A DNA stretch of 64,000 nt from sequence record OR670491.1, one strand, 5' to 3'. Of this stretch, positions 1-56,225 are shown in pieces; positions within the stretch are counted from its first letter, which is position 1, and every line of letters starts with the position of its first letter. The notes under the pieces were generated by a model. The model was not told where the DNA came from and searched no databases. It saw only the letters and a list, made by a program, of their open reading frames with translations. A program made the position numbers and the translations under genes.

Positions 1-62
1 TAATTAAAAAGGATACACTACTCTTAAGGGACATTGATTCAAAAAACCGCATTCGTGCTAAT

Positions 63-365
63 ATGTTTATTGCCCAGAATACTGAAGAAGAATTATCAGT
101 AAGTGATAACACCGAAAAGACAGAGACAGGTGCATATACTATTGACACCTTCAGTGAAGAATGGTATTTTCAAAACAGCCTTCTTCATCATTTACGCCCG
201 TATCAGGATACAAAATCGTTATGGGATATCTATCAAGTACTGAAATGTTGGGACGGGGGTTCTATTGATATGTTATCAGAGATGACTTCAAACTATTCCA
301 ACAGCACTATTGACACAGATGTAGTACTGAAAAAACTATGGAGCATGGTTGCTACTATAGATTAA
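63..365 (+). CDS. hypothetical protein, FQxS-motif family
   Basis: ORF; contains FSEEWYFQNSLL. Confidence 0.7.
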   Translation: MFIAQNTEEELSVSDNTEKTETGAYTIDTFSEEWYFQNSLLHHLRPYQDTKSLWDIYQVLKCWDGGSIDMLSEMTSNYSNSTIDTDVVLKKLWSMVATID

Positions 366-373
366 AAAAAAAC

Positions 374-401
374 GAGCCGGAGTGTTGACTTCGGCTTTTT
401 T
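374..401 (+). terminator. intrinsic terminator overlapping a promoter
   Basis: agccggag/cttcggct stem followed by a T-run. Confidence 0.75.
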
Positions 402-413
402 GTTTGGTACTAT
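385..413 (+). promoter_or_regulatory. sigma70-type promoter
   Basis: TTGACT-17-TACTAT. Confidence 0.65.
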
Positions 414-433
414 ATCTAAAAATAGGAGGATTT

Positions 434-988
434 ATGAGTTCAAGTTGTGACACCTTGTTTGAGCTATGCACCGATTCGCAGTTTGAAGGATGGGTGGATA
501 AAGTTAATGAATTAAGCGAACGTTATGCACGTTTCGTACAACTCGGTGAGTCTCTAAGTAACTTGCCGTTTACTGAGACTGGGGAAAGAGGAAGTTTAAG
601 TTATAAATGTGATGCATTGCGTTTAATTTTATCATATGATGGTTACCCATTTCTAAGATTATATCCACGTTCAAGAAATTCCAATAACTTGAATAATATA
701 ATTACACCACTATTTTTAACTTATAATACTCACAGTACTACACGAATTAAAATCAATAATGATATGCTACCGGACGATATATTAACAGTGTATGACCTCA
801 TGTACAGTCCTGATGAGCATTTTCAGTGCAGTACTCTATATAGTGTTCCTACCTATGAGAACGCTATTAAAACATTGGAGTTGATGCACAGTATTCAAGT
901 CCAAAGTGAACTATCATTAACGATGGAGTATTGTTTCTTCAATCATGATATTCTTAATAATCTAGATACAATTTTATACGGGTACTAA
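434..988 (+). CDS. hypothetical protein, FQxS-motif family
   Basis: ATG at 434 follows AGGAGG (track start 404 lies in the promoter); SPDEHFQCSTL. Confidence 0.75.
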   Translation: MSSSCDTLFELCTDSQFEGWVDKVNELSERYARFVQLGESLSNLPFTETGERGSLSYKCDALRLILSYDGYPFLRLYPRSRNSNNLNNIITPLFLTYNTHSTTRIKINNDMLPDDILTVYDLMYSPDEHFQCSTLYSVPTYENAIKTLELMHSIQVQSELSLTMEYCFFNHDILNNLDTILYGY

Positions 989-989
989 T

Positions 990-1604
990 ATGCGTAAAGA
1001 ATATGTTCAATCTTTTGCTATGTTGCAGCATTTAGAAGAAATACTACCACAGTGTATCAATTTTCAAAAAAGTATATACAAGAAGTACAGTATTTGTTCT
1101 CATATGACACTCCAACATAAGAAGTCAAATTTCTATACAGTGTATGATGATTATAATATCTTCTTAAAAAAGAACGGGTGTGACCTTCTTCATATTGAAA
1201 AGTGCAGTCCTAACAAAAATGACTACAGTGATGAATATGTGTTTATGCCTGAATATGATGAAGTGTATATTAATCCATGTTCGGATTTCACATTTGTTTT
1301 GCACAGCGATGACGATGACTCTGTTTACGATGTTTATGGCGTGTATAATGCAAAGTCTAAGATCATGTCATATGATGGCATTGACTTTAAAATTAAATCT
1401 AAAGATGATTGCGAAGCAGCACTTGCACAAATATTGACATTAGCTAATGTAACTATCAGTACAGACGAAGTGTGGAGTATGATTTCAGTACTTACTTCTT
1501 TGTACAGAAATAAAGATATACGTAATTTTAATATATCTTTTACTGAAACGTTTGATATTAAAAATAAATTGGTAACTGGAAATGAACTATTCGAATCTAA
1601 TTGA
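990..1604 (+). CDS. hypothetical protein
   Basis: 204-aa ORF abutting its neighbours. Confidence 0.7.
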   Translation: MRKEYVQSFAMLQHLEEILPQCINFQKSIYKKYSICSHMTLQHKKSNFYTVYDDYNIFLKKNGCDLLHIEKCSPNKNDYSDEYVFMPEYDEVYINPCSDFTFVLHSDDDDSVYDVYGVYNAKSKIMSYDGIDFKIKSKDDCEAALAQILTLANVTISTDEVWSMISVLTSLYRNKDIRNFNISFTETFDIKNKLVTGNELFESN

Positions 1605-2178
1605 AAATGCAAGAAACCTGAAAGGAATCAAAAACCTTTGGAGTACCTATGAATTTAATTTTCCCAAAAGTTCAGGTCTAGAAAGTTTAAATGTAGATAT
1701 CAAATTCCGTTATAATAATGGCATGACTGGAAAGATTAGGCTACATAAACTGGGTGTTACGTTCTATGATGACTGCGACCACAGTGTAGGTTTGGTAGAG
1801 TTCATTGACAACATGCAACAGGGTGAAAATTATATATGCAGTAGGATTGGTTCTGATGATTCTGAATTTATCATCGGTAATGGTTTACAATTCCATCTCA
1901 CTGAAGACTGGGATGAAGATTATTATGTGTATGATTATGAAAGTAAAAACATTTTTGATGAGAGTGATTCTCTTGTCACAGACCTCAACGAGCGTATCTT
2001 CCAGAAGAGTACTATCCAAGATAATGTGAGAACTCCAGAAGAAATTGTTGACATGTGCAATGCGTATGATACACTTATGGATATTATGAAAACTGATGGT
2101 ATCCAGTACATTTATCTTTGCGATGATGTATACGTGAACCAAATTCTGAAACGACTTGAGACATTTACTAAGAGGTAG
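1582..2178 (+). CDS. hypothetical protein, FQxS-motif family
   Basis: 198-aa ORF; NERIFQKSTI. Confidence 0.7.
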   Translation: MNYSNLIENARNLKGIKNLWSTYEFNFPKSSGLESLNVDIKFRYNNGMTGKIRLHKLGVTFYDDCDHSVGLVEFIDNMQQGENYICSRIGSDDSEFIIGNGLQFHLTEDWDEDYYVYDYESKNIFDESDSLVTDLNERIFQKSTIQDNVRTPEEIVDMCNAYDTLMDIMKTDGIQYIYLCDDVYVNQILKRLETFTKR

Positions 2179-2180
2179 TT

Positions 2181-2597
2181 ATGTTACTGTATCATGCCAG
2201 CCCAGTTAAAATTGAAAACTTTTACATTCCATTCGGTGGTTTGCATCTGGGCGGCAAGAACAGTGCACTGGAAGCAGCCCTACGCAAGCTGAGAAGCCCT
2301 CTGAACGTCGTAGACGCTAATACGGTACATCTGCATACCTGTGAGGTTAACGTCGCTAACGTGTATTTCAGTGATGATTTGGGTAGTGATGATTCATGGC
2401 GTGAGCTTATTGAGTACTGCCAAGCTAATGGCTATGATGCAGTACAGTACAAGAATGAGTTCGAGCCTGATGCTGTTCCTAGCTACATGATTTGGGATGT
2501 ATCTAACATTCGCATCGTTGAAGTTGATCCTATGCATATGGATGATGCAGAAATGATTTTGGAGGATTTCTATGCAGAGTATGAAGGACAATCTTGA
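2181..2597 (+). CDS. putative ADP-ribosyltransferase-fold protein
   Basis: N-terminal LYHAS strand, GLHLGG..SA and GYDAVQYKNEFE resemble small phage ART-fold domains. Confidence 0.4.
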   Translation: MLLYHASPVKIENFYIPFGGLHLGGKNSALEAALRKLRSPLNVVDANTVHLHTCEVNVANVYFSDDLGSDDSWRELIEYCQANGYDAVQYKNEFEPDAVPSYMIWDVSNIRIVEVDPMHMDDAEMILEDFYAEYEGQS

Positions 2598-3105
2598 GTG
2601 CACTAAGGTAATCTTGAAGATTGCTGAAATTTTCAGTACTTTATTGAGCGATGGAAAGATTACAGATGATCTGGTTCTTCCATACCCGTGGAAATTTTCT
2701 AAATTTTCTATATTTTATAAATTAGAATACAAAGAACATGCAGTACTGGAGTTTAATCCTAAAGCTGATTTCATTGAGAATAGTACACTGTTCGGAAAGA
2801 GTGGGTGCTATACATCGGACTTCAAAAAGATTACTACGCATATTCGTCCTTCTCCAGAAGAAAACGAGTTCCATTCATTTCTGTATCCTGAATTTAAGTT
2901 AACTGAAGAACTACTATTTCAGTACTCATTATTGTTCGAAGATGTACAAGATTTAGAGTTCTATAAAGAGTTAGTAGAAACTTTTAAGAATGTGAACCTT
3001 AAAAAAGATATTCTTATATTCTGGTTCATGGAGTATATTTCGAAGGATTTGCTAGATGAGTTTCTTCTAAATATGACAGCAATTAAGGAGAAGTTATATG
3101 CTTGA
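2572..3105 (+). CDS. hypothetical protein, FQxS-motif family
   Basis: LTEELLFQYSLLF. Confidence 0.7.
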   Translation: MQSMKDNLECTKVILKIAEIFSTLLSDGKITDDLVLPYPWKFSKFSIFYKLEYKEHAVLEFNPKADFIENSTLFGKSGCYTSDFKKITTHIRPSPEENEFHSFLYPEFKLTEELLFQYSLLFEDVQDLEFYKELVETFKNVNLKKDILIFWFMEYISKDLLDEFLLNMTAIKEKLYA

Positions 3106-3571
3106 CATTTTAGGTAATATTGATACAGTAAACTATTTCGTACAAGATGCATTGGTTGGGATTACGTCTAAGCCATTGCAGGTTCGCAACAATTTCCATC
3201 AGGGTGATGGATACATTGTGGACATTACTGAACCGAAAAAGAATGTATTCAATGTTAACATTGCAACAACAGGTCGTAACAATATCGCACGAATTATCAT
3301 TGACAAGAATGAAATTGTTCTTCGTTACAATGCTAAGTTCATGATGTTCTTCAAGAGTAAGACTGACATGTTCAGTACTAATCTCTTTGATGAACCATTT
3401 AAATTAGAAGATATCGAAGCAGTATTCTTTACTCAGAGTACGTGCTTTAAGTTCAGAGATGTAGAATTCAGTCCAGATGTAATGACTGAAACTTTACAAA
3501 TGCTAAGGATTATCTATTATGGGTTTAATGAGTTTGCACAAGAACGAAACCAGGTTAACAACTGTAGATGA
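3098..3571 (+). CDS. hypothetical protein, FQxS-motif variant
   Basis: RBS AAGGAG; EDIEAVFFTQST. Confidence 0.7.
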   Translation: MLDILGNIDTVNYFVQDALVGITSKPLQVRNNFHQGDGYIVDITEPKKNVFNVNIATTGRNNIARIIIDKNEIVLRYNAKFMMFFKSKTDMFSTNLFDEPFKLEDIEAVFFTQSTCFKFRDVEFSPDVMTETLQMLRIIYYGFNEFAQERNQVNNCR

Positions 3572-3977
3572 AACAATCGAGGCAGTACTGGCGAATCTTA
3601 GCTCCAAAAGGGATTACTGGTACAAAGGTATCCGTCTGTATCGTTTAACTGATCGTCACAATCAGGTTACGAATCAGTACGGTACACAGCAAGTCAAGTT
3701 CACTGCCTCAAAACGTAACACAGGGTTTGAAATTTCATGTGTAGTGTTAAATCTAAGTAAAAAACTTCTTGAATGCAATGAAGATTGTGCTATAATGTAT
3801 GCATCTGGTAACGAAGAGATCAAGATCGATTACAGTACACTAGATGAAATTGACTTCTTTCAGTACGAATGCATTGGCATTCAGACTCTAGGAGTTTCTC
3901 ATGATAAACTGAAGAAACTAATTCATACATTAAAAGGTATAATTGAACATGCAAGTAACTCCGCGTCTAAAGCTTAA
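3519..3977 (+). CDS. hypothetical protein, FQxS-motif family
   Basis: LDEIDFFQYECI; start uncertain. Confidence 0.65.
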   Translation: MGLMSLHKNETRLTTVDETIEAVLANLSSKRDYWYKGIRLYRLTDRHNQVTNQYGTQQVKFTASKRNTGFEISCVVLNLSKKLLECNEDCAIMYASGNEEIKIDYSTLDEIDFFQYECIGIQTLGVSHDKLKKLIHTLKGIIEHASNSASKA

Positions 3978-4452
3978 TTTAGAAAAAATTGCTGATTATC
4001 TTCGTACTAACAATATGGAACATAGTCTTTCGATTACAAGTGACCATATCCAATGTAGTACTAATGATTATACTGTACTGTTCGGGTTTCATAGCCTACG
4101 TTTGTCAGTAGTAAATAATCATGATGATACAGCAATTGTCATTACACCTTGTGATGTACTGAACAATGATGGTGAAGTACTTCACAAGAAACAAACCGTA
4201 TTCCATATCTTCAGGGGTGATGAGCCACAAGCATTGGAATACGATACACTGAACGTTGATAGTGGTGAATTGTTCCAGTTGGGTTTAGTACATGATTGTA
4301 CTTTCATGGATAACCGAGTAATTCTTCCTTTGTTGTTGAATATTCTGGTTAACCTTACAACATCTTCAATCCGACACTTCAACGATTCTATTTTAGTACA
4401 GGCGATGATAAACGTTTCAGAGGCAATCGAGGAATACAAAGTCGCCAGTTAA
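3943..4452 (+). CDS. hypothetical protein, FQxS-motif family
   Basis: DSGELFQLGLVHD. Confidence 0.7.
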   Translation: MNMQVTPRLKLNLEKIADYLRTNNMEHSLSITSDHIQCSTNDYTVLFGFHSLRLSVVNNHDDTAIVITPCDVLNNDGEVLHKKQTVFHIFRGDEPQALEYDTLNVDSGELFQLGLVHDCTFMDNRVILPLLLNILVNLTTSSIRHFNDSILVQAMINVSEAIEEYKVAS

Positions 4453-4492
4453 CCAATGCACAGGGAGTGCGATAAAGGATCAAGGATAGATC

Positions 4493-4966
4493 ATGGAGAC
4501 GAAAACTGTTGAGAACGGAAAGATAGATGACATTTTAGAATTGGACGCATTTAAAGTTCATGATATAATGTTCAATGTTAAAGACATTATTCAGTGTCTT
4601 TTCTTATGTAGCAAAACTATGCATGACTACTTTCACAACCCAAATACTAACATCTTTATACTTACTATTAGTACTGAAAACTCTTTCATCATGGGTATGC
4701 CTATGAGTACTAATGAAAAGTACATTGATAGTGTAATCCGTAATAATGAGAACATAACCCCACAATCTGAAGTGCATAAGAAGAAAAATACTTATACCAT
4801 TAAAGATGATAAAATTATGTTATGTTGTACTAAGGGATTTATTTTGGATAATTTTAAAGTGAAAGATAGTTATCATGATTTCAAAATATCTGAAAAGCAA
4901 ACTAATGTAGTTTTATATGCCACCGATATTGAAAGCCTAACAGTTAAAGATCCTGATTTGGAGTAA
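4493..4966 (+). CDS. hypothetical protein
   Basis: 157-aa ORF with AAGGA RBS. Confidence 0.65.
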   Translation: METKTVENGKIDDILELDAFKVHDIMFNVKDIIQCLFLCSKTMHDYFHNPNTNIFILTISTENSFIMGMPMSTNEKYIDSVIRNNENITPQSEVHKKKNTYTIKDDKIMLCCTKGFILDNFKVKDSYHDFKISEKQTNVVLYATDIESLTVKDPDLE

Positions 4967-4968
4967 TT

Positions 4969-5100
4969 ATGGCTAAAAATGTAAACAACTTCGTTCAGAA
5001 ACACATGAATGAGTTTAACAAACCTCAAACCCATGTGGATCGCAAAAAAGCGATGAAGAATGGAAAAACAAAACACAAGTCGAGATATATTCTCGACTAA
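4969..5100 (+). CDS. small basic protein (not in ORF track)
   Basis: GGAG RBS; translates as MAKNVNNFVQKHMNEFNKPQTHVDRKKAMKNGKTKHKSRYILD; resembles small basic proteins of T4-like phages. Confidence 0.65.
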   Translation: MAKNVNNFVQKHMNEFNKPQTHVDRKKAMKNGKTKHKSRYILD

Positions 5101-5119
5101 TTTTTTGCCTGGAGAAAGT

Positions 5120-5953
5120 ATGAAAGAATTTGATTACAAAAGTAAGTCAGTACTGGAATACATTGAATTACTAAATTCTAAAAATATTCCATTCGATGAT
5201 ACCAAGCTCCTTGGAAATGGAGATGAAAATTCATATAGTACTGAAAACTATGTAATCATTATTTCAAATGCAGCACCAGATATTGACATTACAGTACATA
5301 AGAAAAATAATGCCGCAGTGTTTATGTATACTCAAGATAGTAAATCAGAGTACTTACATTTCAGGGATATGAATTACTACAAAGAGAATGGTGAATTTAT
5401 ATTAAAATACAATATACTAAAGAATATCGAATTAAAAAAAGCACGATACTTTGATGGTGCTTATGACGTTAAAAGTTCAGATAAGCTTTGTATATTCACC
5501 ATGCATAAAAATATAGAAAAAGACAATGGATGGACTGAATTTGAAACTAAGTTCGATGAACAGAAAGTTTCTAATTTGTCAATACAAGAACGTTATGAAG
5601 GTTCAGATGTAGTGTGCAGTGCTGCTTACTTTCGTGCATTTGATAACACAACGAAACGTATGCAAATGCAAAACATTGACATTACGTTCAATGAAGGGTA
5701 TAGTACTGTTACTATTTCTTCAGGATATCGAAACAAGTTTACATTTGAGGTAGCAGTTCCAGACGGGTCAATTCTACACATATTTGACCCTGAATATATG
5801 TTCCAAGTTGAATTAACACTTGACACAGAGCAGTATGATAAATTACAATTTATTAGAAATTCAATCCAAGAAAAATTGGAATTATACCACTTACTAGGTG
5901 GAAAGAATCACAAAGCAACAATAGCATTACAAAATATCAAAAGTAAAAGGTAG
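5120..5953 (+). CDS. hypothetical protein, FQxS-motif family
   Basis: ATG at 5120 after GGAG; DPEYMFQVEL. Confidence 0.7.
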   Translation: MKEFDYKSKSVLEYIELLNSKNIPFDDTKLLGNGDENSYSTENYVIIISNAAPDIDITVHKKNNAAVFMYTQDSKSEYLHFRDMNYYKENGEFILKYNILKNIELKKARYFDGAYDVKSSDKLCIFTMHKNIEKDNGWTEFETKFDEQKVSNLSIQERYEGSDVVCSAAYFRAFDNTTKRMQMQNIDITFNEGYSTVTISSGYRNKFTFEVAVPDGSILHIFDPEYMFQVELTLDTEQYDKLQFIRNSIQEKLELYHLLGGKNHKATIALQNIKSKR

Positions 5954-5972
5954 TTCAAGGAGAGGATTTAGT

Positions 5973-6266
5973 ATGGATACTAAATTTACAATAAAGTTTC
6001 TAGATGAGCCATGTATTCCATATATTGGTGACAGGTTCAAGCCTTATGGTGCGAAGGAAGTTACGCATCCTGATGGCAAAACAATATATTTGGCCCCAGC
6101 GTCTTATGAGCGAGCAGTTGAAATGCTTATCATGAATTCTAAGTATTGCAAAGACAAATATATTAGTTACTTATACAATGAACATGTGTTAGACTTCAAT
6201 GACGAAAACATGTTTGTACTGGTAGTTTCAGATTTTAGTACTTGGCACGAACATCTGTTGTACTAA
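5973..6266 (+). CDS. hypothetical protein
   Basis: GGAGAGG RBS; NDENMFVL motif variant. Confidence 0.65.
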   Translation: MDTKFTIKFLDEPCIPYIGDRFKPYGAKEVTHPDGKTIYLAPASYERAVEMLIMNSKYCKDKYISYLYNEHVLDFNDENMFVLVVSDFSTWHEHLLY

Positions 6267-6275
6267 AATAAATTG

Positions 6276-6303
6276 TGGACATTTAAATTCCTTATGATAT
6301 AAT
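6276..6303 (+). promoter_or_regulatory. early promoter
   Basis: TGGACA-16-TATAAT with TGn extended -10. Confidence 0.65.
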
Positions 6304-6335
6304 GTTCGCATCTTTTTTGATAAACGGAGATATAC

Positions 6336-6722
6336 ATGAATACAAGTTCAGTTCTAAAAGCGATTGGCGGTGTCCTTCTAATTGAAGTTCTAGGTGAGTC
6401 AAAACTCTGCTGCGTAGAAGACATGAAGAGTACTAAATTCTTCAGTACTGGTCAAATCTTCAATGCGATTCGCGTACTGAATGATAAGACTGTTGAAGAC
6501 TACGGCAAGGTTTGGCCTCAATACCGAAACCAAGATGGTGAAATCAGTACTGATTGGAAAACCTTAGAAGCAGTTCGTGAAAGCTGTAATAGCGATTGGG
6601 AATTCGTTATTGAAGTATGTGACCAACTACAAGAAGACGTTCCTGATGTTATCGAACGTAAAGAAGTACAAGCACAACTTGAAAAGTTCCGTCATGGTAC
6701 ACTACCATACGATCTTATCTAA
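6336..6722 (+). CDS. hypothetical protein
   Basis: GGAG RBS, 128 aa. Confidence 0.75.
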   Translation: MNTSSVLKAIGGVLLIEVLGESKLCCVEDMKSTKFFSTGQIFNAIRVLNDKTVEDYGKVWPQYRNQDGEISTDWKTLEAVRESCNSDWEFVIEVCDQLQEDVPDVIERKEVQAQLEKFRHGTLPYDLI

Positions 6723-6774
6723 TCTGCGATTTATCAAAAACATCTAATTAACATTATATAAAAAGGAATTTAAA

Positions 6775-7077
6775 ATGGAAGACAACGGAATGAAATTTGA
6801 CATGTTTGAAGGTGTACCAGAGTACGATTTCACTCGAATTGAAGAAGGTGAACAATCTGAAGTAGTTAGTGTTACACTAAAAGCTGATTCCAAAAAGAAA
6901 CCAGCAGAGCGTCGTGCTCGTTCTCAAGAAGAATATGAAACCTTCATCGAGAGCGTACACTATGAAACGTTCTATACTAAAGATGGTGCACCATATGAAG
7001 TTCGCGTTACAGTACTGAAGCCTGAAGTGAATCCACTTGAGAACCTTAAACCAGTTTACTGTTGGGCTAGTCATTAA
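6775..7077 (+). CDS. hypothetical protein
   Basis: AAGGA RBS, 100 aa. Confidence 0.75.
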   Translation: MEDNGMKFDMFEGVPEYDFTRIEEGEQSEVVSVTLKADSKKKPAERRARSQEEYETFIESVHYETFYTKDGAPYEVRVTVLKPEVNPLENLKPVYCWASH

Positions 7078-7085
7078 TAGTCAAG

Positions 7086-7113
7086 AGGCTGGGAGATAAT
7101 CCTGGCCTTTTTT
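7086..7113 (+). terminator. intrinsic terminator
   Basis: aggctggga/tcctggcct stem + T-run. Confidence 0.75.
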
Positions 7114-7128
7114 ATTCAGAGGATTTAA

Positions 7129-8082
7129 ATGAAATTATACCTAATTCCATGTTATGATATTGAAGATTACAATTACGCGGAAGATAGCGAAGGTGGTAAT
7201 CACGCTTCCGATATGAATGTATTCAGCGTAAGTACTCATAAGCATGAACGTTATACTAACTTTAGTACATTTCTTCAATATAATACTTTTGAAAATTTGA
7301 CATTTCGCCAGCGTTACAATGCTTACGAATACCAACTAATTGATATTTCAGATGATCTAACTTTTCAATTCATGCTATTAGGTCTAAAGGATTTCGATTT
7401 CATTGCGTATAATCATAAAACTAAGAAGATCTATGTAGGTAATAATTCATATCGTATTGCAGGATTAGCATCTGATCCTAGTGAAGAAGAACCAGATCAA
7501 GCTAATGCTTCAAGTTCGACTTCATTAGCGGGTCGTCGTCGTGCACAATCAAAACATAATTCTTCGTATGGTGGTCGTAGTAATAGACCATCACAGCGTA
7601 TGTTTACGTTCAATTCACCACAAGAAGAACCAGTACCATACGATGAAGAAGATCAAGAAGAAGTTCAGATTCGTATTGACAGTACTAATGGATACGATGA
7701 AATTAAAAAAGAATTAATGGTTTACATGGAAGATATCTACTACAAGATGTTCACTAAAACTGCCATCCATTTACGTAGTTCAGGTAGACATATCATCGGT
7801 GAACAGTCTAATAGTCTGTTTAGTGATGATGGATATTCGTCTGTGTATGACCCAAATGCAGTGCGTAACGCAAATCCAGTAGGTTACAAACGTACTAATT
7901 CCTCTTATGATGAAGCACTACAATTGACCACTGAAGAGTTTGGTTTTTTGTTTGAATCATACTTGAACGATGATGAATTGTGGATTAATACACAAAAGAA
8001 AATCCATCATAGACACAAAGAATGCATTCGTGCTTATACTTGTGATGCATGGAAAAAGTTCACAGAATGTGAGACAAAATAA
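7129..8082 (+). CDS. hypothetical protein, FQxS-motif variant with low-complexity middle
   Basis: GAGGA RBS; ISDDLTFQFMLL. Confidence 0.75.
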   Translation: MKLYLIPCYDIEDYNYAEDSEGGNHASDMNVFSVSTHKHERYTNFSTFLQYNTFENLTFRQRYNAYEYQLIDISDDLTFQFMLLGLKDFDFIAYNHKTKKIYVGNNSYRIAGLASDPSEEEPDQANASSSTSLAGRRRAQSKHNSSYGGRSNRPSQRMFTFNSPQEEPVPYDEEDQEEVQIRIDSTNGYDEIKKELMVYMEDIYYKMFTKTAIHLRSSGRHIIGEQSNSLFSDDGYSSVYDPNAVRNANPVGYKRTNSSYDEALQLTTEEFGFLFESYLNDDELWINTQKKIHHRHKECIRAYTCDAWKKFTECETK

Positions 8083-8098
8083 AAATTAGTGATATAAT
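8071..8098 (+). promoter_or_regulatory. early promoter
   Basis: GAGACA-16-TATAAT with TGn. Confidence 0.5.
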
Positions 8099-8100
8099 TT

Positions 8101-8134
8101 AAGGTGATAGCAGAGTTGTTATCACCTTTTTTTT
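8101..8134 (+). terminator. intrinsic terminator
   Basis: aaggtgatagc/gttatcacctt stem + T-run. Confidence 0.8.
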
Positions 8135-8750
8135 AATCCTGAAAGGTTCCATAAGGAAATGATTAAGACCTAATCCACTCGAAAAGTAGAGGGTAGTTGA
8201 GTAGTCCTTTCAGTACGAACAGCAGAAGAAACCCGTTAGATGTTGGCATAGTTTGAACCACTCACGGCAATGCGGCTGTATAAAGAACTCCGATAAGCAC
8301 ACAGAGAGTTCCTAGATAGACATATAAGGATCGCACCTTACGAGATTTGCTAAGGGAGATTTCACTTTGAAACGCGGTCGTAATTTATACAATATAGTTG
8401 CGTCCAAAATTTGTGAAATCAAATACAAGTACTGTTCATATGGTATTTGTATTATGTGTCGGGATGTTTAAGACCGACGACCGTTGCTACAAGAACCGCA
8501 ATAGAGAGAAACAGAGCAACCCGCTTTCGCCCCAGTACTGGGAATTTGTGATATGAATATGTGAAGACCATCAGCGTCAAACTTTTTGTTCTTTCCCCTG
8601 CGGGGGGATGAAATATGTTCAAACAAATCCCGTCAATATTAATTAAACTACTAATAAAGCTGAATTAGACATGCGAAGCGTGTATAATTCTACCGATTTT
8701 TATTGAGTGCTAACGAAATAAAAGTCGTGTACATTCATTGATGTTTCCAT
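8135..8750. ncRNA. candidate large structured ncRNA (or replication origin)
   Basis: ~620 nt with no ORF of 60 aa or more on either strand; at least 9 complementary helices including long-range pairings. Confidence 0.45.
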
Positions 8751-8757
8751 AGGAATA

Positions 8758-9300
8758 ATGATGTCTTCAAGAAAATCAAGTGTAAGTATTGTGTATAAGT
8801 CAAGTAATTTTTTGGATTGTAATGAACCTCAAGACTTTGAGAGTTTTAGTGGTTTTCAAATTATCAGAGAACGAGGTAAGCTCTCTTATATCAGAGAACT
8901 ACAAGACGGAATTGAGATTACATCTATTAAATTCAGACCTACACAAATACCCACAATCCTCAAAGCACAATATGGTAATTACTTCGAAGAGAGATACAAC
9001 GGGAACACTATTAGTTCTAAGTGTCACTTAATCAACGGAGATTTAGAAGGAGAGTACAGAAAGTATAGCCCCGATGGAACGTGCATTGGCGTTAAATATT
9101 TCTGTTCAGGAGTCGATGTAACCCAGGAGATCATTGACTTTTTGAAATTAAATTGCACAGTACTGACAATACATGAGTATAAGTTCACGGAAGAAGAAGA
9201 GTTTGTACTTATGGTCAGATACGGTTCACATTTTAAGTTTTACTATGAATATAACATTGACAGTAGTACTTTTGATAATATAGTACTTAACTGTCTATAA
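8758..9300 (+). CDS. hypothetical protein (MORN-like repeat segment, acidic-F motif variant)
   Basis: NGDLEGEYRKYSPDG resembles MORN-variant repeats; FTEEEEFVL. Confidence 0.6.
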   Translation: MMSSRKSSVSIVYKSSNFLDCNEPQDFESFSGFQIIRERGKLSYIRELQDGIEITSIKFRPTQIPTILKAQYGNYFEERYNGNTISSKCHLINGDLEGEYRKYSPDGTCIGVKYFCSGVDVTQEIIDFLKLNCTVLTIHEYKFTEEEEFVLMVRYGSHFKFYYEYNIDSSTFDNIVLNCL

Positions 9301-11585: not shown

Positions 11586-11870
11586 ATGAAATCAGAAGAT
11601 ATAGAATTTACATATAGAGTTCTTTATAAAATGTATGCAAATCCAGTTGAAAATGATTTCACTTACTATGAAACACTTAGAACAATATGGATAATTTACT
11701 TACAAAATATTAAAGATTATTTCATAGGAAAACATATAACAATTAATAACATAAAATATAAATGTACTGATGTTACTAGTTATAGTGGGAAACTATCTAT
11801 TGAATTTTATCATCAAAATTCTTTTTATAGAAGATATCTTTCGGAGGTTAATTTGAATGATATTCAGTGA
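11586..11870 (+). CDS. small hypothetical protein (YxGKxV family)
   Basis: EDIEFTY...YFIGKHI. Confidence 0.65.
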   Translation: MKSEDIEFTYRVLYKMYANPVENDFTYYETLRTIWIIYLQNIKDYFIGKHITINNIKYKCTDVTSYSGKLSIEFYHQNSFYRRYLSEVNLNDIQ

Positions 11871-12129
11871 TTTACAATTCACGTATAAATGTATATTCGA
11901 TATTAAAGAGTCAGATAAATTACTTGACAATTTGTGGAGAATGTATCTAGAAGAAATACGTGAATATTTTTCGAAAGATGGTGGCTACACTATTCTTTAC
12001 AATAACGTAAAGATGGAGTACCAATACCTCCATAGTTACAATGGTAGAATTGAGGTTAGATTCTTTTCTAGTCAAATTGGTGGAAGGGACTTTATTTTGG
12101 AAGAATTAGATGAATACGAAACAGTATAA
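11857..12129 (+). CDS. small hypothetical protein (paralog of 11586)
   Basis: SDLQFTYK, SYNGRIE motifs. Confidence 0.65.
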   Translation: MIFSDLQFTYKCIFDIKESDKLLDNLWRMYLEEIREYFSKDGGYTILYNNVKMEYQYLHSYNGRIEVRFFSSQIGGRDFILEELDEYETV

Positions 12130-12415
12130 AGACTGGCAATTCATATACAGATATTTGTACCGCCAGCACATCGATAGTATAGTTGAGAATGACGCATTTC
12201 GAATATTATGGCGTAGGGAGTTAGAAAAGCTTCGTTCACATTTCGTGGATTCTATATTCACACAAGATGGTCACATTTTCAAATGCGTTAGTGAGTACAA
12301 CATTCACTCATATGATGGTAACGTTGCTATAAGTTTTCATAAAATAACTGACGTTGATGATGGAAGAACATATACATACGAGATGACAAAATTACCGGAG
12401 AATCTTAAAACATGA
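12110..12415 (+). CDS. small hypothetical protein (paralog of 11586)
   Basis: KDWQFIYR, SYDGNVAI motifs. Confidence 0.65.
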   Translation: MNTKQYKDWQFIYRYLYRQHIDSIVENDAFRILWRRELEKLRSHFVDSIFTQDGHIFKCVSEYNIHSYDGNVAISFHKITDVDDGRTYTYEMTKLPENLKT

Positions 12416-14953: not shown

Positions 14954-15643
14954 ATGATTAAAGATATAGATAAAGTACTGTTTGTACTAAAAGGTATAGT
15001 CACTTTGTATCGTGATATTACAAATATGCAATCCACCTTTGGATTAAAAGACATGGAAACTGAATATACACATTTGGAATACCTTAAATCGTCCCTATGT
15101 ACCGAGGATTCGGAGTACTCAATTCATCCAGTACTGGTAGAGCCATTTCAGGGTACTGGGTTCGGTATTTTCGATAAGAACATGGAACTAATTTCGATGT
15201 TCAGAGTTATGGACGGTCTTATCAACAGAACAGTACTATACAGTACGTGGGCTAACATAAATCCAAAATATCCAACGATTAAAGCCTTTGATGGTTCCCA
15301 AAAAGAAATAACCGTCGATGTTGATGAGAACATGACAGAGGAAGAACACTTCCAGACTTTAATGTTCAGGCAAATGCCAGAGTATAAACATATGATTGAT
15401 GCAATCAATTATACTAAAGAGATACTTCCTGCACTTGAAGTAAACAAATTCATGCACCCTGTTGATTACAATCACTTGAACTTAGATTTATCTAATACAC
15501 ACTTCTCTGAAAAGGTATTACAGTGTATTCAAAATGATACTAAGTTTGATTTCCTAAAAATACTAAAAGAAAATCCAAGAACAGATTTCTTTAAAGAATA
15601 TAATAATTCGTTCAGTACTGGCGATACTTCATGGTGGAAATAA
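14954..15643 (+). CDS. hypothetical protein, FQxS-motif family
   Basis: MTEEEHFQTLM. Confidence 0.7.
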   Translation: MIKDIDKVLFVLKGIVTLYRDITNMQSTFGLKDMETEYTHLEYLKSSLCTEDSEYSIHPVLVEPFQGTGFGIFDKNMELISMFRVMDGLINRTVLYSTWANINPKYPTIKAFDGSQKEITVDVDENMTEEEHFQTLMFRQMPEYKHMIDAINYTKEILPALEVNKFMHPVDYNHLNLDLSNTHFSEKVLQCIQNDTKFDFLKILKENPRTDFFKEYNNSFSTGDTSWWK

Positions 15644-19147: not shown

Positions 19148-19405
19148 ATGGATATGTTACAAGTGCAATTAAAACAAAGTACTGACTTGATACTTTCTAT
19201 TATTGAAGATCTAAATCAACAGTACTTAGGAAAACGTGTCATAACTCATACAAAGATTAAAGGGTTTGTTTCGTTAATTTATTTTAATTCATATGAAAAT
19301 AAACTATGCGTTCGAATTAGAACCATAGATGAAGAAACTGGGTATGAGGATGGTGGATTAGCATCTATACCTTTTCAAAATTTAAGGTTATTAGAAGATG
19401 ATTAA
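19148..19405 (+). CDS. small hypothetical protein (YxGKxV family)
   Basis: QQYLGKRVI. Confidence 0.65.
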   Translation: MDMLQVQLKQSTDLILSIIEDLNQQYLGKRVITHTKIKGFVSLIYFNSYENKLCVRIRTIDEETGYEDGGLASIPFQNLRLLEDD

Positions 19406-19649
19406 AACAGAATTAGCATTAGTAAAACTGCATGTAGACTACGCAACAGTACTCGTAGAAGATCTATCAAAAAAGTACGTTGGTAAACGTGTGCGTTGCT
19501 ATTATAGTGAATATGATTATAAACATGATTTCCGTGTACAAGAGATTTTTCTGTTCGACGGGGTTATTAATATTCGTGTAATCAATGAACATAACCATAC
19601 CTATACATATGGCCTAAATGCAACTATAGAGGAATTGCCAGATGAATAG
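19398..19649 (+). CDS. small hypothetical protein (YxGKxV family)
   Basis: KKYVGKRVR. Confidence 0.65.
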   Translation: MIKTELALVKLHVDYATVLVEDLSKKYVGKRVRCYYSEYDYKHDFRVQEIFLFDGVINIRVINEHNHTYTYGLNATIEELPDE

Positions 19650-21887: not shown

Positions 21888-22124
21888 ATGATGACATTTT
21901 TTGGAATTTATGGTTTCGTTGCTATATGTTCATTTGTATGCAACTTTATAGTACTAAATTGGGGTTGTTTCAAAGATGAACTAATCACCATAATTAGTCT
22001 ACAATCCGCAGCACTTATGGCTATTATATGGCCTGTAACATTGGTATATCTTCTTATCTCATTGGTGCGAGATGTAAAAGATAAGTACGTTAAGAACTCT
22101 AAAAAAGGTGAGAAACATGACTAA
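21888..22124 (+). CDS. membrane protein
   Basis: two hydrophobic segments, IIWPV. Confidence 0.65.
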   Translation: MMTFFGIYGFVAICSFVCNFIVLNWGCFKDELITIISLQSAALMAIIWPVTLVYLLISLVRDVKDKYVKNSKKGEKHD

Positions 22125-22374
22125 TGTAGATAAATCTCATATTCGTTATTTGTTTTCTTTAGTTGATGATTTCTTACAAGATATCAAGCCCAAGTACATT
22201 GGGAAAGAAGTCCGTTTGACACATACCAGAGGTTACTATAAACATATCATTGAAGATGTTATTCTTCGTAAGGGTGAGTTGTGCTTTAAAGTTTGCAATT
22301 ACCTTGAAGATGGTACGTATGCTGGTTCTCAAATGGTACATGATGATAAGATTATTTGGATGAATATTGAATGA
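22117..22374 (+). CDS. small hypothetical protein (YxGKxV family)
   Basis: PKYIGKEVRL. Confidence 0.65.
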   Translation: MTNVDKSHIRYLFSLVDDFLQDIKPKYIGKEVRLTHTRGYYKHIIEDVILRKGELCFKVCNYLEDGTYAGSQMVHDDKIIWMNIE

Positions 22375-48156: not shown

Positions 48157-50856
48157 ATGTCAAAGAAAATATATGGTGGCTTAGATGTCACACATAATGT
48201 TACAGTGAAAGGGAAACGTACTGTTCAAGGTATCAATGATCAAGTTTTTGATTCCAATGGTAACATGGAACTTGATACTTATACTAAAGAAGAAATTCTT
48301 GACGTAATTAGTATGATGCCTTTGTCACATTATGGTACACATAACTATCTACCTGCTGGTGTAAGTGGTGACTTCAACGGAGCATCAGAAAACACATCAC
48401 AGCGTAGAAACAAAATTCTATTAGAAGATGACGGAACATTAGTAATGTTGCGTGCTGGTACAAACGGTAGTGTGGAAGGTCTATTCTACTCTTACCTAGC
48501 GAACGCATTAACTATTGAAGATATGGGTCGTACCGTGAATACTGGTAAGCAGTATCAACCAGGGTTTTTGGGTTCCACAAAAGTTGCTTTCGGTTTATAT
48601 AACACTGATAGTAATATAATGATTGGTCAATATAAAGATACAACTAATAGCACTACTGGTTATTTTGTATCTATTACAAACAATACACTTGATGATACTC
48701 AGCACTCAGGATTTATCATTAATCAGTACACTGACCTTTCACCACAAGGTAACATTGAATATGCAATGATGGCAGAAGATGGTTCAATCTATGTGTTTAG
48801 TTTAGATGTTGCAGATAATAAAATGCACATGATTGTACAGCGTATTGTGTTTAATATTAGTGCTGGTACATACACTACATCACGTATATCTGGATGGACT
48901 ACAAAAACATTCTACAATACAACTATCAGTGCTAATACTAATATAGTATTAACCAACAGAACTTATTCAACTGATATTGTAGATAAACCATATGCTCTTG
49001 TACCAACTAACCTACGTGGTATTGGTATATACATGACTTCATATGATTTATATGTTGCACAACAGCCTGGTACTCAGAACTTCCGTTTCCGTTTAAATGG
49101 GGACTTATGGGCGACAATGGCAGACTATAATACACGTCCACAACATAGTTTTAGTTTCAATTTCAATATGAGTACTAAACAATGTACGTTAGATACTGGC
49201 AATGACATTGGTTCATTCCAAGCACCTATCGTTATTACAAATACTGGGACTCAATTAGTTGCTACTGGTAATGCTCTAAACAAAGATGATTTTTATAACC
49301 ACAGTGGTGCACGTAACATTTATAGTGGATATTACTATTCAGTAGAAGGTGTTGCTTTCTGTACAATATGTCCAAACCTAGCAGAACCATTACACATGGA
49401 AAAAGGTCATTACCCAGCACAATCTGTTTATAGCATGATAAATGTTAGAGCAGTGAGTTGTACAGATTTTCGTGATGGAAGAGTTGGTCCGACATTTGGT
49501 TCAGCAGTAGGGTCATATATCAACGGTGTTGAATTGTTACCTGATAACAGTACTAAACAGTTCTCTCGTGCTTCCGGTACAGGTTCTTACCAACCATCAT
49601 ATGCAGTGCATAAGAGTACTCCTAACTTTACGTTCAAATCACTTTCAATGGGGACTATTCAGGGTTATGAGCCAACAGCAGAACGTGCAAACGTAGCTGA
49701 TACGACCAACAACCGAGTATTCATTAGTTCAATTTCAGGAAGTACAGTTACAACTAATGGTGGTGTACTAATATGTGGTCAACGTTACTCACAGTCGTTA
49801 TCATATGATAAGTACATGAATGGTACTAACGTAATTAGTGTTACTCAATCAGTACTTGACAACTTCAGAACAGCAGAGTATGCTAAAGTTGCTAGTTCAT
49901 GGAACCTATCAAGTGCATCGGGTAAAGACATGTCGTTGTTTGTTCCACAGCAATCTGACATTCCAGCGTTTGTGTTTCTCAGTTCAGTGACGAACAATAA
50001 CCAGAACTATATTCGTGTTGCAGAAGTTAATGTTAATACAAGAGTAGGGAACATTACTAGTATTACATTTAAACGTTTAGTTTATGAAAACGTTCATGGT
50101 GATAACTTCGTTTCGAATACATCAGGTTCATTCTCTTCTTCATCTGTTGGTATGACAATTTATGATGGTGGTTCATTCTATTTCTTAGGTGGTTCTGATC
50201 CATTAACACATAATACTATCGGTAACACAAATACACATATGTTCCGTGCTTATGTTACTAAATCCACTGCAACTATTGATAGCTTCATTATTGCGGGTGG
50301 TCACGCCAGTTATGAACAAGGTGCTCAACCAGCAGCGTTGCCTGGATTGGGTTTTGGTATTTTTGCTGCAATTGACTATTCTAACAAAATGACATTCGTA
50401 CCTTTTGGAACAACTATTGCTGATTATAACGCATGGACACAGAAAGCGACTGCAATAAACTTAGTATCACAAGACGTTGCACAAGGTTTTATCGTGTACT
50501 TCACCGAAGAAACACCAGTAATACTATCAGGTAAATCATTTACTCTACCTATTTCGAATATTGATTTAACAACTGTAAAAGCTAATCCAGCCAATACGAC
50601 GTTTTATCTTTATATTAAAATGGAGCAAGGTAATGTTAAATACCACATAACTACTGAAGTTATTTCAGAAGCTGGTACTTCTGCATATAACGTATTTTGG
50701 ATTGGAACAATTAAAACTAACTCTCTTCAAATTGAAACAGTAAATGTTGAAAAACGTTCTCGTTTGGATATATTTGGTGCATCACTAGAAGCAGCAGGTT
50801 CTTCATTCCCAGTAAGTTATGGTTTACCATCACAAACAGGAACTATCAACTGGTAA
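48157..50856 (+). CDS. large beta-rich virion/tail protein (paralog A)
   Basis: 899 aa, Thr/Ser/Gly/Asn-rich; late promoter; termini shared with 50869 and 51473. Confidence 0.7.
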   Translation: MSKKIYGGLDVTHNVTVKGKRTVQGINDQVFDSNGNMELDTYTKEEILDVISMMPLSHYGTHNYLPAGVSGDFNGASENTSQRRNKILLEDDGTLVMLRAGTNGSVEGLFYSYLANALTIEDMGRTVNTGKQYQPGFLGSTKVAFGLYNTDSNIMIGQYKDTTNSTTGYFVSITNNTLDDTQHSGFIINQYTDLSPQGNIEYAMMAEDGSIYVFSLDVADNKMHMIVQRIVFNISAGTYTTSRISGWTTKTFYNTTISANTNIVLTNRTYSTDIVDKPYALVPTNLRGIGIYMTSYDLYVAQQPGTQNFRFRLNGDLWATMADYNTRPQHSFSFNFNMSTKQCTLDTGNDIGSFQAPIVITNTGTQLVATGNALNKDDFYNHSGARNIYSGYYYSVEGVAFCTICPNLAEPLHMEKGHYPAQSVYSMINVRAVSCTDFRDGRVGPTFGSAVGSYINGVELLPDNSTKQFSRASGTGSYQPSYAVHKSTPNFTFKSLSMGTIQGYEPTAERANVADTTNNRVFISSISGSTVTTNGGVLICGQRYSQSLSYDKYMNGTNVISVTQSVLDNFRTAEYAKVASSWNLSSASGKDMSLFVPQQSDIPAFVFLSSVTNNNQNYIRVAEVNVNTRVGNITSITFKRLVYENVHGDNFVSNTSGSFSSSSVGMTIYDGGSFYFLGGSDPLTHNTIGNTNTHMFRAYVTKSTATIDSFIIAGGHASYEQGAQPAALPGLGFGIFAAIDYSNKMTFVPFGTTIADYNAWTQKATAINLVSQDVAQGFIVYFTEETPVILSGKSFTLPISNIDLTTVKANPANTTFYLYIKMEQGNVKYHITTEVISEAGTSAYNVFWIGTIKTNSLQIETVNVEKRSRLDIFGASLEAAGSSFPVSYGLPSQTGTINW

Positions 50857-50868
50857 GGGATTACAATT

Positions 50869-51456
50869 ATGGCTTATATTATAAGATCAGATATTGAAGC
50901 AATGACAACAATTAAGTCCAGGGGATTAGACACTGGACTTTCATTAACAGACATTGATGACGTATCTTATTCAACTGATGTTAACGGGGAATGTACGTTC
51001 CCTGTATTAACCTCAGATGAAATCGACTACATTATGAATGGTTTACCACTGTCACAGTACGGTGAACTATATGATTCAACCAGTCTAGGTGTTACATTTT
51101 CTGGTTATGATTTGAAATTTGGACGAATTGTTCCGGCGTTTATTGGTGGACATTTATATGATTACCCAGTCAGTACTGTTAAAGCTAAAACAGTAACGTC
51201 AGGTACACACACACAATATGTGTATGCTACGTTAGTACTGGGTGTACCATTATATGAAATTTCAGCGACCGCCATTGCTGAAACACAAATTCAAATGTTC
51301 ATTGGTACAATAACAGTTGGTACAGCAGGAATAACAGCAGCAAACATAGAACGCGTTTCAAGGTTCAGTACATATAGACCTAGTACTACTCAGAAAGGTT
51401 CGTCCTTCCCAGTCAGTACAGGAAATCCGGCACAAACTGGTTCTATAGGCTGGTAA
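50869..51456 (+). CDS. short virion/tail paralog
   Basis: LPLSQYG and C-terminal FPVSTGNPAQTGSIGW shared with both long paralogs. Confidence 0.7.
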   Translation: MAYIIRSDIEAMTTIKSRGLDTGLSLTDIDDVSYSTDVNGECTFPVLTSDEIDYIMNGLPLSQYGELYDSTSLGVTFSGYDLKFGRIVPAFIGGHLYDYPVSTVKAKTVTSGTHTQYVYATLVLGVPLYEISATAIAETQIQMFIGTITVGTAGITAANIERVSRFSTYRPSTTQKGSSFPVSTGNPAQTGSIGW

Positions 51457-54204: not shown

Positions 54205-54233
54205 AAGCTCGTCTATTGACGGGCTTTTCTTTT
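54205..54233 (+). terminator. intrinsic terminator overlapping a promoter
   Basis: aagctcgtc tatt gacgggctt + T-rich tail. Confidence 0.75.
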
Positions 54234-54244
54234 ATGTGTATACT
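54216..54244 (+). promoter_or_regulatory. sigma70-type promoter
   Basis: TTGACG-17-TATACT. Confidence 0.7.
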
Positions 54245-54269
54245 GTATGAAAACTGGGAGGTATTTTGT

Positions 54270-54812
54270 ATGAAATTCTTTAAGAAGAAAGACGATTTAG
54301 ATTGGTGTGCGTATGTCCAAGAACGTAAGATTAATAAATGTATTTTTAAATTAATTACTAAAAGTATCTTACTCAAAGAAAGTATCAAAACGGATCAAGA
54401 CCGTAGAGATTTAATCAATTTAAAGTACAAAGTAAGTTCATTTTTCTTTTACAATCTAATGAAAGAAATTGCCACGAGTACAGATCCTGATCGTTGGGAT
54501 GTTGATGTTGACCGATATTACGGTGGGGACATTAGTTTCACTATTCGTGATAGAAAGAAGAATGTATCCATCAACGCGGATTATGATACTGCTGATAATG
54601 TTCAGTTTGATGATCCCAATTTACGAATTAAAGATGAAGAAGTCAGAGTGAGTATTCGCAAAGATTTTGTTAAAACACATTTAGAAAGTCCAGAGAAATT
54701 CATTATGATTTACTTTGTAATGGAGTACGTTAGTGTTACAGAAAATCTAAAGAATTTAAGAAGACTACAAAATGAGCACGAGCTAAAACTATCAGTCAGA
54801 GATTGGTACTAG
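54270..54812 (+). CDS. hypothetical protein (tandem paralog 1)
   Basis: GGGAGG RBS; MKFFKKK, KS..LK....D.DRR..I..KYK. Confidence 0.7.
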   Translation: MKFFKKKDDLDWCAYVQERKINKCIFKLITKSILLKESIKTDQDRRDLINLKYKVSSFFFYNLMKEIATSTDPDRWDVDVDRYYGGDISFTIRDRKKNVSINADYDTADNVQFDDPNLRIKDEEVRVSIRKDFVKTHLESPEKFIMIYFVMEYVSVTENLKNLRRLQNEHELKLSVRDWY

Positions 54813-54820
54813 GAGAGAAC

Positions 54821-55339: not shown

Positions 55340-55824
55340 AGAAGCAACAAGCAAATACAAATCCTCTTACTGAGTTCATTGGTTCACTTATTCTAAGCAA
55401 AAGTCCATTACTTGTTCAGCACTGCAAGGATGATTATGAACGTGAAATTATCATTAACAGAAAATACATTCATTCAAAATGTGACTCTATGATTTACAGC
55501 TTCGTAAAGTACTGCTTAGTGAATCGTAATTACGTCAGTGTTCATTGTGAAGATGAACCGTGTTATGATGGATGGGCGAAAGAATGGTTTATTTTTGAAA
55601 ATGGTCGTGGGTTCAAATTCTTTTCATTACCTGATGGTTCAGTTAGTATCTTCATCGCTAACAGAAATGAATGGGTAGAGTATTCCACATCAAAATATGA
55701 TTATGATGTTCTCGCTGATTTATATCGTTGTATTAAGAATTTTCAAGTAATTGAAGCCAATTTAGAAAAACAACGAAGAAATCTTAAATGCGTCGAACAA
55801 TACAATGAAATGTACAGGTGCTAA
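55324..55824 (+). CDS. hypothetical protein (tandem paralog 3)
   Basis: MFKILKK, KSPLL...DDYEREIIINRKY. Confidence 0.7.
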   Translation: MFKILKKQQANTNPLTEFIGSLILSKSPLLVQHCKDDYEREIIINRKYIHSKCDSMIYSFVKYCLVNRNYVSVHCEDEPCYDGWAKEWFIFENGRGFKFFSLPDGSVSIFIANRNEWVEYSTSKYDYDVLADLYRCIKNFQVIEANLEKQRRNLKCVEQYNEMYRC

Positions 55825-55826
55825 TT

Positions 55827-56225
55827 ATGGATATTAACGATATCTATAGTACTATACGTTCTATGGGTGATAGTCGAAAAGTATATGGTGATAGTAATCG
55901 CCAAAAGATATATGGCATTAACTCATACGATGTAATATCGTTTGAGTATGATGAAGGTGGACATAGTTCAATAAACATTGTTTGTCCACGTGACTCTGAA
56001 AATAACTTCATGTACGTTGAAATTAATAATGAAGGAATCAATTTCATTAAGATTCACAAAGGTGGAAAGACACATGAAGTACTGGATTTATCAGAAGAAG
56101 ATCGTTTCTTCCAGGAAGATACAGTGATTGATTTAGGCTTTAGTCTAAGTGATTATCACATTCTCCAAGAAGATTTCCTGAAATATTACAATGGCTTTCT
56201 AAAGGAGTTAACAATACACTTATGA
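55827..56225 (+). CDS. hypothetical protein, FQxS-motif family
   Basis: LSEEDRFFQEDTV. Confidence 0.7.
   Translation: MDINDIYSTIRSMGDSRKVYGDSNRQKIYGINSYDVISFEYDEGGHSSINIVCPRDSENNFMYVEINNEGINFIKIHKGGKTHEVLDLSEEDRFFQEDTVIDLGFSLSDYHILQEDFLKYYNGFLKELTIHL

Follow-up and report, generated by a model that had tools for sequence, protein, structure and literature searches.

An FQ-helix motif points to one large, fast-evolving paralog family in Escherichia phage vB_EcoM_JNE01 and related jumbo phages

The stretch analysed here, which we call the window, comprises bases 1-64000 of the record of Escherichia phage vB_EcoM_JNE01 (OR670491.1, Asteriusvirus, 355,583 bp, host E. coli O157:H7). A first-pass annotation had noticed 13 window proteins which share acidic residues followed by FQ, S/T and a hydrophobic residue near the C-terminus, and had described them as otherwise dissimilar proteins in which a common module carries variable payloads. 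Our results show that this motif is the signature of one large, old and fast-evolving paralog family, named here the FQ-helix family. By iterated profile search, which recruited no shuffled decoys, eight of the 13 proteins were homologous over ~130 residues, and the description as dissimilar proteins does not hold for them. They are diverged paralogs of one domain of ~130-160 residues with the motif helix inside it, so the idea of a module with unrelated payloads was given up.

Homology and extent of the FQ-helix family

The homology was detected with jackhmmer in a database that combined the open reading frames (ORFs) from the first 20 kb of the window with those of six syntenic loci and with as many shuffled decoys. 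A search started from the product of 404-988 recruited 73 proteins and 0 decoys. When the query was a member from phage ph0011, the search converged after 11 rounds with 114 proteins and no decoy even at E = 1, and the alignments spanned up to positions 3-151 of the 159 positions of the hidden Markov model (HMM). A further iterated profile search gave 169 matches, also with no shuffled decoy. When the motif columns were masked and each BLAST-linked group was scored with a profile trained without it, 11 of 18 groups remained above all their decoys, indicating that the relationship extends beyond the motif. Outside the motif, the members have diverged to ~10-20% identity. BLASTP among the window proteins gave no pairwise links between family members, and pairwise hhalign with shallow orthogroup profiles was too weak to join them; orthologs of 404-988 and 14954-15643 in related phages match each other by BLASTP with 28% identity over 115 aa (E 1e-4). 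Profile searches against Pfam, NCBIfam, PADLOC and PDB sequences gave no family match above threshold, and neither the ESM Atlas search nor a search for related loci in viral contigs gave a match. In PHROGs, each window member matches one family of unknown function (phrog_34636, 29816, 30625, 35972, 33838, 38478, 32531 and 22376). PHROGs keeps the members as separate families, whereas the profile searches reported here join them into one.

Searching all JNE01 ORFs and their decoys with the iterated HMM detected 51 distinct genes at E < 1e-3, and no decoy was recruited at thresholds up to E = 10. Together with two ortholog-supported genes, the family comprises ~53 members, which is ~9% of the ~570-583 genes of the phage. 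The members are 106-229 aa in length (median 158 aa), and they are acidic, with a median isoelectric point of 4.8 versus 5.6 for other proteins of similar size. About 38 of them are located in one plus-strand array of ~24.5 kb that starts at 335.5 kb, crosses the record ends and stops at 4.45 kb, in which the genes are arranged head to tail and the stops and starts are mostly overlapping or abutting. The remaining copies are found at 231-234 kb, 244-256 kb, 276 kb, 293 kb, 306 kb and 72.7 kb, in addition to the window genes at 14.9 kb and 55.8 kb. The array adjoins genes for Dam, a cytidylyltransferase, an RNA ligase, polynucleotide kinase (PNK) and phosphatases. Directly upstream of it, ~20 tightly packed ORFs of 74-117 aa were observed at 330.6-335.5 kb of JNE01.

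The linear JNE01 record begins within a gene, and the ORF 3..365 lacks its own start. In Turkey5, a phage with 97.8% identity, the DNA of the JNE01 record start is situated in the middle of the genome. Upstream of the position of the window's first base, Turkey5 and other Asteriusvirus phages carry 8-10 kb with ~16 further tandem genes of 113-207 aa, most of which bear a much sharper motif (LSTEELFQMSC, MSSEEIFQYSLVHK, LSPENFFQQSLLYP, SEESYFQNSLIY). The corresponding upstream DNA was recovered at the far end of the JNE01 record. The window contains only the tail of the main array, and the span 63-9300, to which the first-pass annotation had assigned the motif proteins, was too small, as the array begins at the opposite end of the linear record, ~20 kb before this span.

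A search of 1.84 billion representative proteins with the family profile gave only 30 matches at E < 1e-3. Where the source of these matches was named, they belonged to Asteriusvirus phages and to E. coli-labelled assembly records, mostly contigs of ~350 kb. Among single phage genomes, the profile matched 46 proteins in phAPEC6, 34 in Salmonella phage SD-15_S21, 9 in Salmonella phage Munch, 4 in Erwinia phage Kaldavass and 2 in Serratia phage BF. The same profile gave 0 matches in Pectobacterium phage CBB, where a broader local HMM found 8 matches and no decoy, with the canonical motifs TEEWFFQLSTIKD and SEESFFQQSTVHD. As far as these sequence searches indicate, the family is specific to Rak2-like jumbo phages. 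The divergence is fast even within the genus. Between JNE01 and ph0011, positional orthologs of the members show a median identity of 32% versus 62% for the non-family neighbours, and the neighbouring Dam and cytidylyltransferase are 85% and 81% identical, respectively. No description of the family was found in the literature, and a comparative review of jumbo phages mentions other expansions only (PMC7824862).

All 13 strings listed by the first-pass annotation were found at their ORFs. Within the first 6 kb, 7 ORFs contained the pattern [DE]x(0-3)FQxx[hydrophobic], where within-protein shuffles predict 0.65, and a count of 7 was reached in none of 2000 shuffles; the stricter FQx[ST][hydrophobic] was observed 4 times in the same region versus 0.08 expected from such shuffles. 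The remaining 97 window ORFs showed a mild enrichment (10 versus 3.9 expected). By this comparison with shuffled proteins, which the annotation had itself named as a check, the motif is clearly non-random. The logo over the 53 JNE01 members reads L-[TS]-E-E-x-[FYL]-F-Q-x-S-[LT]-[LVI]-[YH]-[DN], with Q in 48 members (M in 5), S in 42, E in 37 and E/D in 42. The F, present in 53 of 53 as it was the anchor used for the alignment, has a value of 0.98 in the family profile itself. The distance from this F to the C-terminus is 49 residues in the median (10th-90th percentile, 33-62) across the 53 members, which agreed with the location near the C-terminus noted earlier. For the family as a whole, the form [TS]-E-E-x-x-F-[QM]-x-S-[LT]-[LVI] at 30-65 residues from the C-terminus holds; 14954-15643 departs from the position, with a distance of 96, and the five non-members among the 13 depart from the form or position too.

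At the conserved positions of the motif, synonymous codons are mixed, and Ser is encoded by both AGY and TCN. It suggested that selection acts on the protein, and the possibility that the motif DNA serves as a recombination signal was rejected on this ground. A synonymous bias was also observed at the motif: the Gln codon is CAG in 77% versus 34% genome-wide (~48 genes, e.g., window 2920-2922), and the Ser codons are AGY in 69% versus 41% genome-wide.

Predicted structure and possible role

The protein encoded by 2572-3105 was modelled by AlphaFold2 with its orthologs, the window paralogs, and paralogs from a European Nucleotide Archive (ENA) contig of a divergent relative as input. The model had a predicted local distance difference test score (pLDDT) of 81.6 and a predicted template modelling score (pTM) of 0.80. 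Its order is a helix at residues 2-26, seven beta-strands within 40-104, helices at 112-121 and 125-139, a short strand, and a helix at 158-176. DSSP analysis of this model placed the motif TEELLFQYSLL exactly at helix 112-121, with T111 as the N-cap and E112-E113 in the first turn, and the acidic residues at motif positions +7/+8 directly precede the next helix (125-139). The family domain is predicted to consist of an N-terminal helix, an antiparallel beta-meander, the motif helix, and C-terminal helices. A low-confidence model of 55818-56225 (pLDDT 53) gave an N-terminal helix, strands, the motif helix at 93-102 and a C-terminal helix. The helical segment after the motif, already proposed in the first-pass annotation, was seen in both the confident and the low-confidence model.

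A Foldseek search of BFVD with the model of 2572-3105 gave ~30 matches, all of them uncharacterised proteins, from Klebsiella phage RaK2, Cronobacter phage GAP32, Yersinia phages fHe-Yen9-03/04 and Erwinia phage pEa_SNUABM_47, with a probability of up to 1.00, a template modelling (TM) score of up to 0.59 and an identity of 8-21%. These fold relatives are multi-copy proteins of the RaK2, GAP32, Yersinia and Erwinia jumbo phages. A putative shared fold of the members has behind it one confident model and these matches to paralogs in other genera; the second model shows the same order of elements at pLDDT 53. Foldseek against the PDB gave nothing significant, and in VIA-align against 48,161 chains the best Z was 4.9, which is below the usual background. 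The predicted fold thus appears to have no recognisable solved relative, and an error of the model is a possible cause of this result. The p32/gC1qBP family (MAM33) was considered as a candidate, as it shares with the model an N-terminal helix, seven antiparallel strands, C-terminal helices and an acidic character, and p32 family chains made up 9 of the top 10 listed PDB rows of Foldseek (E 0.1-0.7). This fold was rejected, with a Foldseek TM of ~0.18 and a VIA-align Z < 2 for the p32 chains.

On a helical wheel, the conserved motif positions -4, -3, -1, 0, +1, +3, +4 and +5 fall on one wide arc, and the variable positions -2 and +2 lie opposite; the placement of the conserved face was deduced from the helical geometry. 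We propose that [TS] would be the N-cap and EE the first turn of a single short helix, in which the residue before F, F itself, Q, and positions +4 and +5 would share one helical arc and the following [DN] would cap the next helix, leaving positions -2 and +2 on the exposed side. The motif may thus be mainly a structural keystone, which clamps the helical part of the domain onto the sheet. This proposal would explain why the motif was kept while the rest of the protein diverged beyond the reach of BLAST.

Two other uses of the motif were compared with these predictions. The Q-x-S-L-hydrophobic spacing resembles the beta-clamp-binding motif QL[SD]LF, by which the proteins would dock on host DnaN, as the first-pass annotation had speculated. 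The partial likeness consists of Q, S at position 3, then L/T and L/V/I, and some members indeed read QLSLI or QLSLL. However, the second position varies (Y, L, M, E, Q, N), the motif ends in L/V/I and rarely in F, and the clamp motifs of the Dalrymple consensus have no counterpart to the conserved F and the acidic residues before Q. Moreover, the segment is predicted in both models to be a helix internal to the domain, and it would be largely buried and not an exposed peptide; fifty clamp binders in one phage also seem implausible. The resemblance is limited to Q, S and L, and docking on the clamp is extremely improbable. The second possibility is a protease site, because E-x-x-[YF]-F-Q resembles the TEV/3C-type sites (ExxYxQ then G/S) and several members read EESYFQ, EEWYFQ or EDMYFQ, so that a common protease would cut after Q. 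The residue after Q is, however, variable, and the conservation runs six residues further, which fits a helix and not a cleavage site; the segment is also predicted to be helical. No 3C-like protease was seen, and the annotated prohead protease is T4-like, a type that cleaves after Glu. We give this possibility hardly any credence.

The first-pass annotation had also raised a capsid-loading or injection tag, which would direct the proteins to the prohead for injection with the DNA. It speaks for a tag that jumbo phages package numerous internal proteins and that phAPEC6 possesses an inner body (PMC7247149); nothing specific ties the FQ-helix family to these. The virion proteome of phAPEC6, the only one available for the genus, comprises 62 proteins detected by mass spectrometry (PMC7247149 Table 1). 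The family matches of this phage are gp039c, 087c, 093c, 121c, 127c-129c, 291c, 318c, a member at 277 kb next to gp378c, and gp404c with the rest of the main array after it. The main-array matches run to 318 kb, and the annotation used for the comparison extends to gp439c (306 kb). The 62 virion proteins include none of the 46 members. The virions also yielded no gp between 347 and 549, and gp318c, the ortholog of 55818-56225, was absent from the proteome. In addition, the motif is predicted to be an internal helix of a folded domain near the C-terminus and not a terminal peptide, and it does not match the short N-terminal targeting peptide of the T4 IP/Alt type. The virion data contradict the tag, and a role in packaging is very unlikely.

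From these observations, the members are probably cytoplasmic proteins which are produced during infection and do not enter the virion. They may form a diversified repertoire which binds host or competitor targets by the variable surfaces, for host takeover or counter-defence. Such a repertoire would be maintained by tandem duplication and the rapid divergence of the copies. The array context, with Dam, RNA-repair enzymes and phosphatases beside it and tiny ORFs upstream, fits this suggestion. We place the whole explanation, that is one fast-evolving family with a keystone motif helix and a non-virion role in host interaction, at a probability of roughly 60%.

Several points weigh against this explanation. 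The function of the family is entirely inferred. No data on expression timing, partners or phenotype were found, and no Asteriusvirus transcriptome was found in the literature; parts of the array recur in short contigs of wastewater RNA libraries, which attest the presence of the sequence and do not prove or time its transcription. The burial of the conserved face is a deduction from helical geometry and not from coordinates, the pLDDT near the motif is only ~74, and the quality of the second model is poor (pLDDT 53). A functional site could explain the invariant Q and the two Glu equally well, and fast divergence fits relaxed constraint as well as an arms race. Finally, the virion proteome is that of a relative, phAPEC6, and not of JNE01, and mass spectrometry can miss low-copy proteins.

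A functional site is the core of another reading, in which the conserved EE, FQ and S helix binds one shared hub of the host or phage and the variable rest of each protein recruits a different target. The near-invariant polar residues (Q 48/53, E 37/53, E/D 42/53, S 42/53) exceed those of most structural motifs, in proteins where everything else diverged to ~10-20% identity; the over-use of the CAG codon for the motif Q and the acidic nature of the family also point in this direction. On the other hand, the conserved residues share an arc with the hydrophobic positions, with the variable ones on the opposite arc by helical geometry, and no candidate hub is known. Such an adaptor family is possible but unlikely, and the structural keystone is preferred here.

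Members and neighbouring genes in the window

All 17 genes under 63-9300 carry the annotation hypothetical. The coordinates of the 13 motif proteins are given in Table 1. Eight of them are family members by profile support, and membership was not supported for the proteins starting at 3098, 5060, 5973, 7129 and 8758 (hhalign probability <=1%). The size and position of 3098-3571 would fit a degenerate member. Some of these five proteins retain an FQ-like string of their own across their orthologs, and the five could be very degenerate members of the family.

Table 1. The motif proteins of the window and their assignment to the FQ-helix family.
Coordinates	Strand	Assignment	Evidence and remarks	Motif
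3..365	+	Family member, 3' part	Record start cuts the gene, which begins at 355367 and has 193 aa in full; E 3e-18 (full gene)	SEEWYFQNSLLHH
404..988 (annotated from 434)	+	Family member	Iterated HMM E 9e-17; F 54 aa from the C-terminus	SPDEHFQCSTLYS
1582..2178	+	Family member via orthologs	Ortholog L006_9409 E 1e-20; 5/7 orthologs in family alignment; hhalign 97%	LNERIFQKSTIQD
2572..3105	+	Family member, best-scoring in the window, modelled	E 2.6e-20	
2902..2940	+	Motif codons of the 2572-3105 protein	Residues 111-123	TEELLFQYSLLFE
3098..3571	+	Membership unsupported	hhalign probability 0.2-0.8%	FFTQST, kept among orthologs
3519..3977	+	Family member via orthologs	Ortholog L006_11349 E 8e-14; hhalign 94-96%	LDEIDFFQYECIG
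3943..4452	+	Family member, later iterations only	Iterated HMM E 1.3e-9; first-round hhalign 38%, on the motif alone	DSGELFQLGLVHD
5060..5953	+	Membership unsupported	hhalign 0.1-0.2%; orthologs keep FQ, not the acidic residues or S	
5973..6266	+	Non-member by every test	hhalign <=1%	NMFVL, without Q
7129..8082	+	Membership unsupported	hhalign ~1%; string at residue 79 of 317	DDLTFQFML
8758..9300	+	Non-member by every test	hhalign <=1%	EEFVL, without Q
14954..15643	+	Family member (229 aa), separate from the main array	E 1.7e-19 (jackhmmer), 1e-14 (iterated HMM)	MTEEEHFQTLMFR
55818..56225 (ATG 55827, giving 132 aa)	+	Solitary family member among late, tail-fibre-like genes	E 3.5e-12, 5e-10	LSEEDRFFQEDTV

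The ORF 3519-3977 (152 aa) has orthologs in all relatives; it carries no coding sequence feature in the GenBank records of JNE01 and Turkey5, and it is called on the ENA contigs. Another gene inside the array, 2181-2597 (+), encodes a 138-aa protein outside the family with 76% identity to ph0011, where the ortholog is annotated as a putative ADP-ribosyl transferase; Pfam and NCBIfam gave no match for it. The 43-aa gene at 4969-5100 (+) has the Pfam domain DUF7230 (PF23876) and is conserved in all relatives. An ORF-poor gap was found at 8135-8750, with a terminator-like hairpin beside it at 8101-8128. This gap is the sole part of the first 9.4 kb with megablast matches in distant genera, namely in phages of Erwinia, Xanthomonas, Serratia, Pectobacterium, Klebsiella and Salmonella, with 75-88% identity.

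Other small sets of tandem paralogs were detected by BLASTP in the regions 11586-12415, 19148-19649, 22108-22374 and 54216-55824. The set at 11.6-12.4 kb consists of three paralogs of ~90-100 aa (E 3e-5 to 3e-3), and 54216-54812 and 54803-55339 are paralogs with E 7e-6. Two paralogs of ~900 aa at 48157-50856 and 51473-54199 share 27% identity over 934 aa (E 2e-61). The gene at 50869-51456 (195 aa) matches the C-termini of these two proteins, and all three are among the tail-fibre-like late genes.

Significance and comparison with known systems

No database recognises the FQ-helix family as one, and it has no counterpart among solved structures. In JNE01, about one gene in eleven belongs to this single family, and the Rak2-like relatives have several to dozens of members. 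The annotation of such phages becomes simpler when about 50 hypothetical proteins of each genome are united in one family. The family also points to a large repertoire with fast turnover, which probably shapes the dealings between phage and host. This bears on host range and on the application of Asteriusvirus phages to E. coli O157 and avian pathogenic E. coli (APEC). The sharply conserved helix also offers a handle for mutagenesis and pull-down.

For the adaptor reading, the F-box/PRANC families of poxviruses would provide an analogy. By this analogy, the EE-FQ-S helix would dock on one hub, and the ~50 paralogs would be a phage-encoded library of substrate adaptors for targets of the host or of rival phages. 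We consider it a rather doubtful extension. If true, such a library would be a bacterial-virus counterpart of the F-box/PRANC proteins of eukaryotic viruses, on a fold without a PDB match.

Multigene families of large DNA viruses, which arose by tandem duplication and rapid divergence, are among the nearest known parallels to the FQ-helix family. The MGF360/505 genes of African swine fever virus (ASFV), the US22 genes of herpesviruses, the ankyrin-PRANC genes of poxviruses and the early hyperplastic regions of T4-like phages likewise comprise dozens of tandem same-strand paralogs in accessory regions. Fast divergence, differences in copy number between relatives, absence from the virion, and a presumed role in host interaction are further common features. 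These families, however, have no kinship in sequence or fold with the FQ-helix family, which differs from them in that it occupies ~9% of the genes of one phage and is marked by a nearly invariant 14-residue helix.

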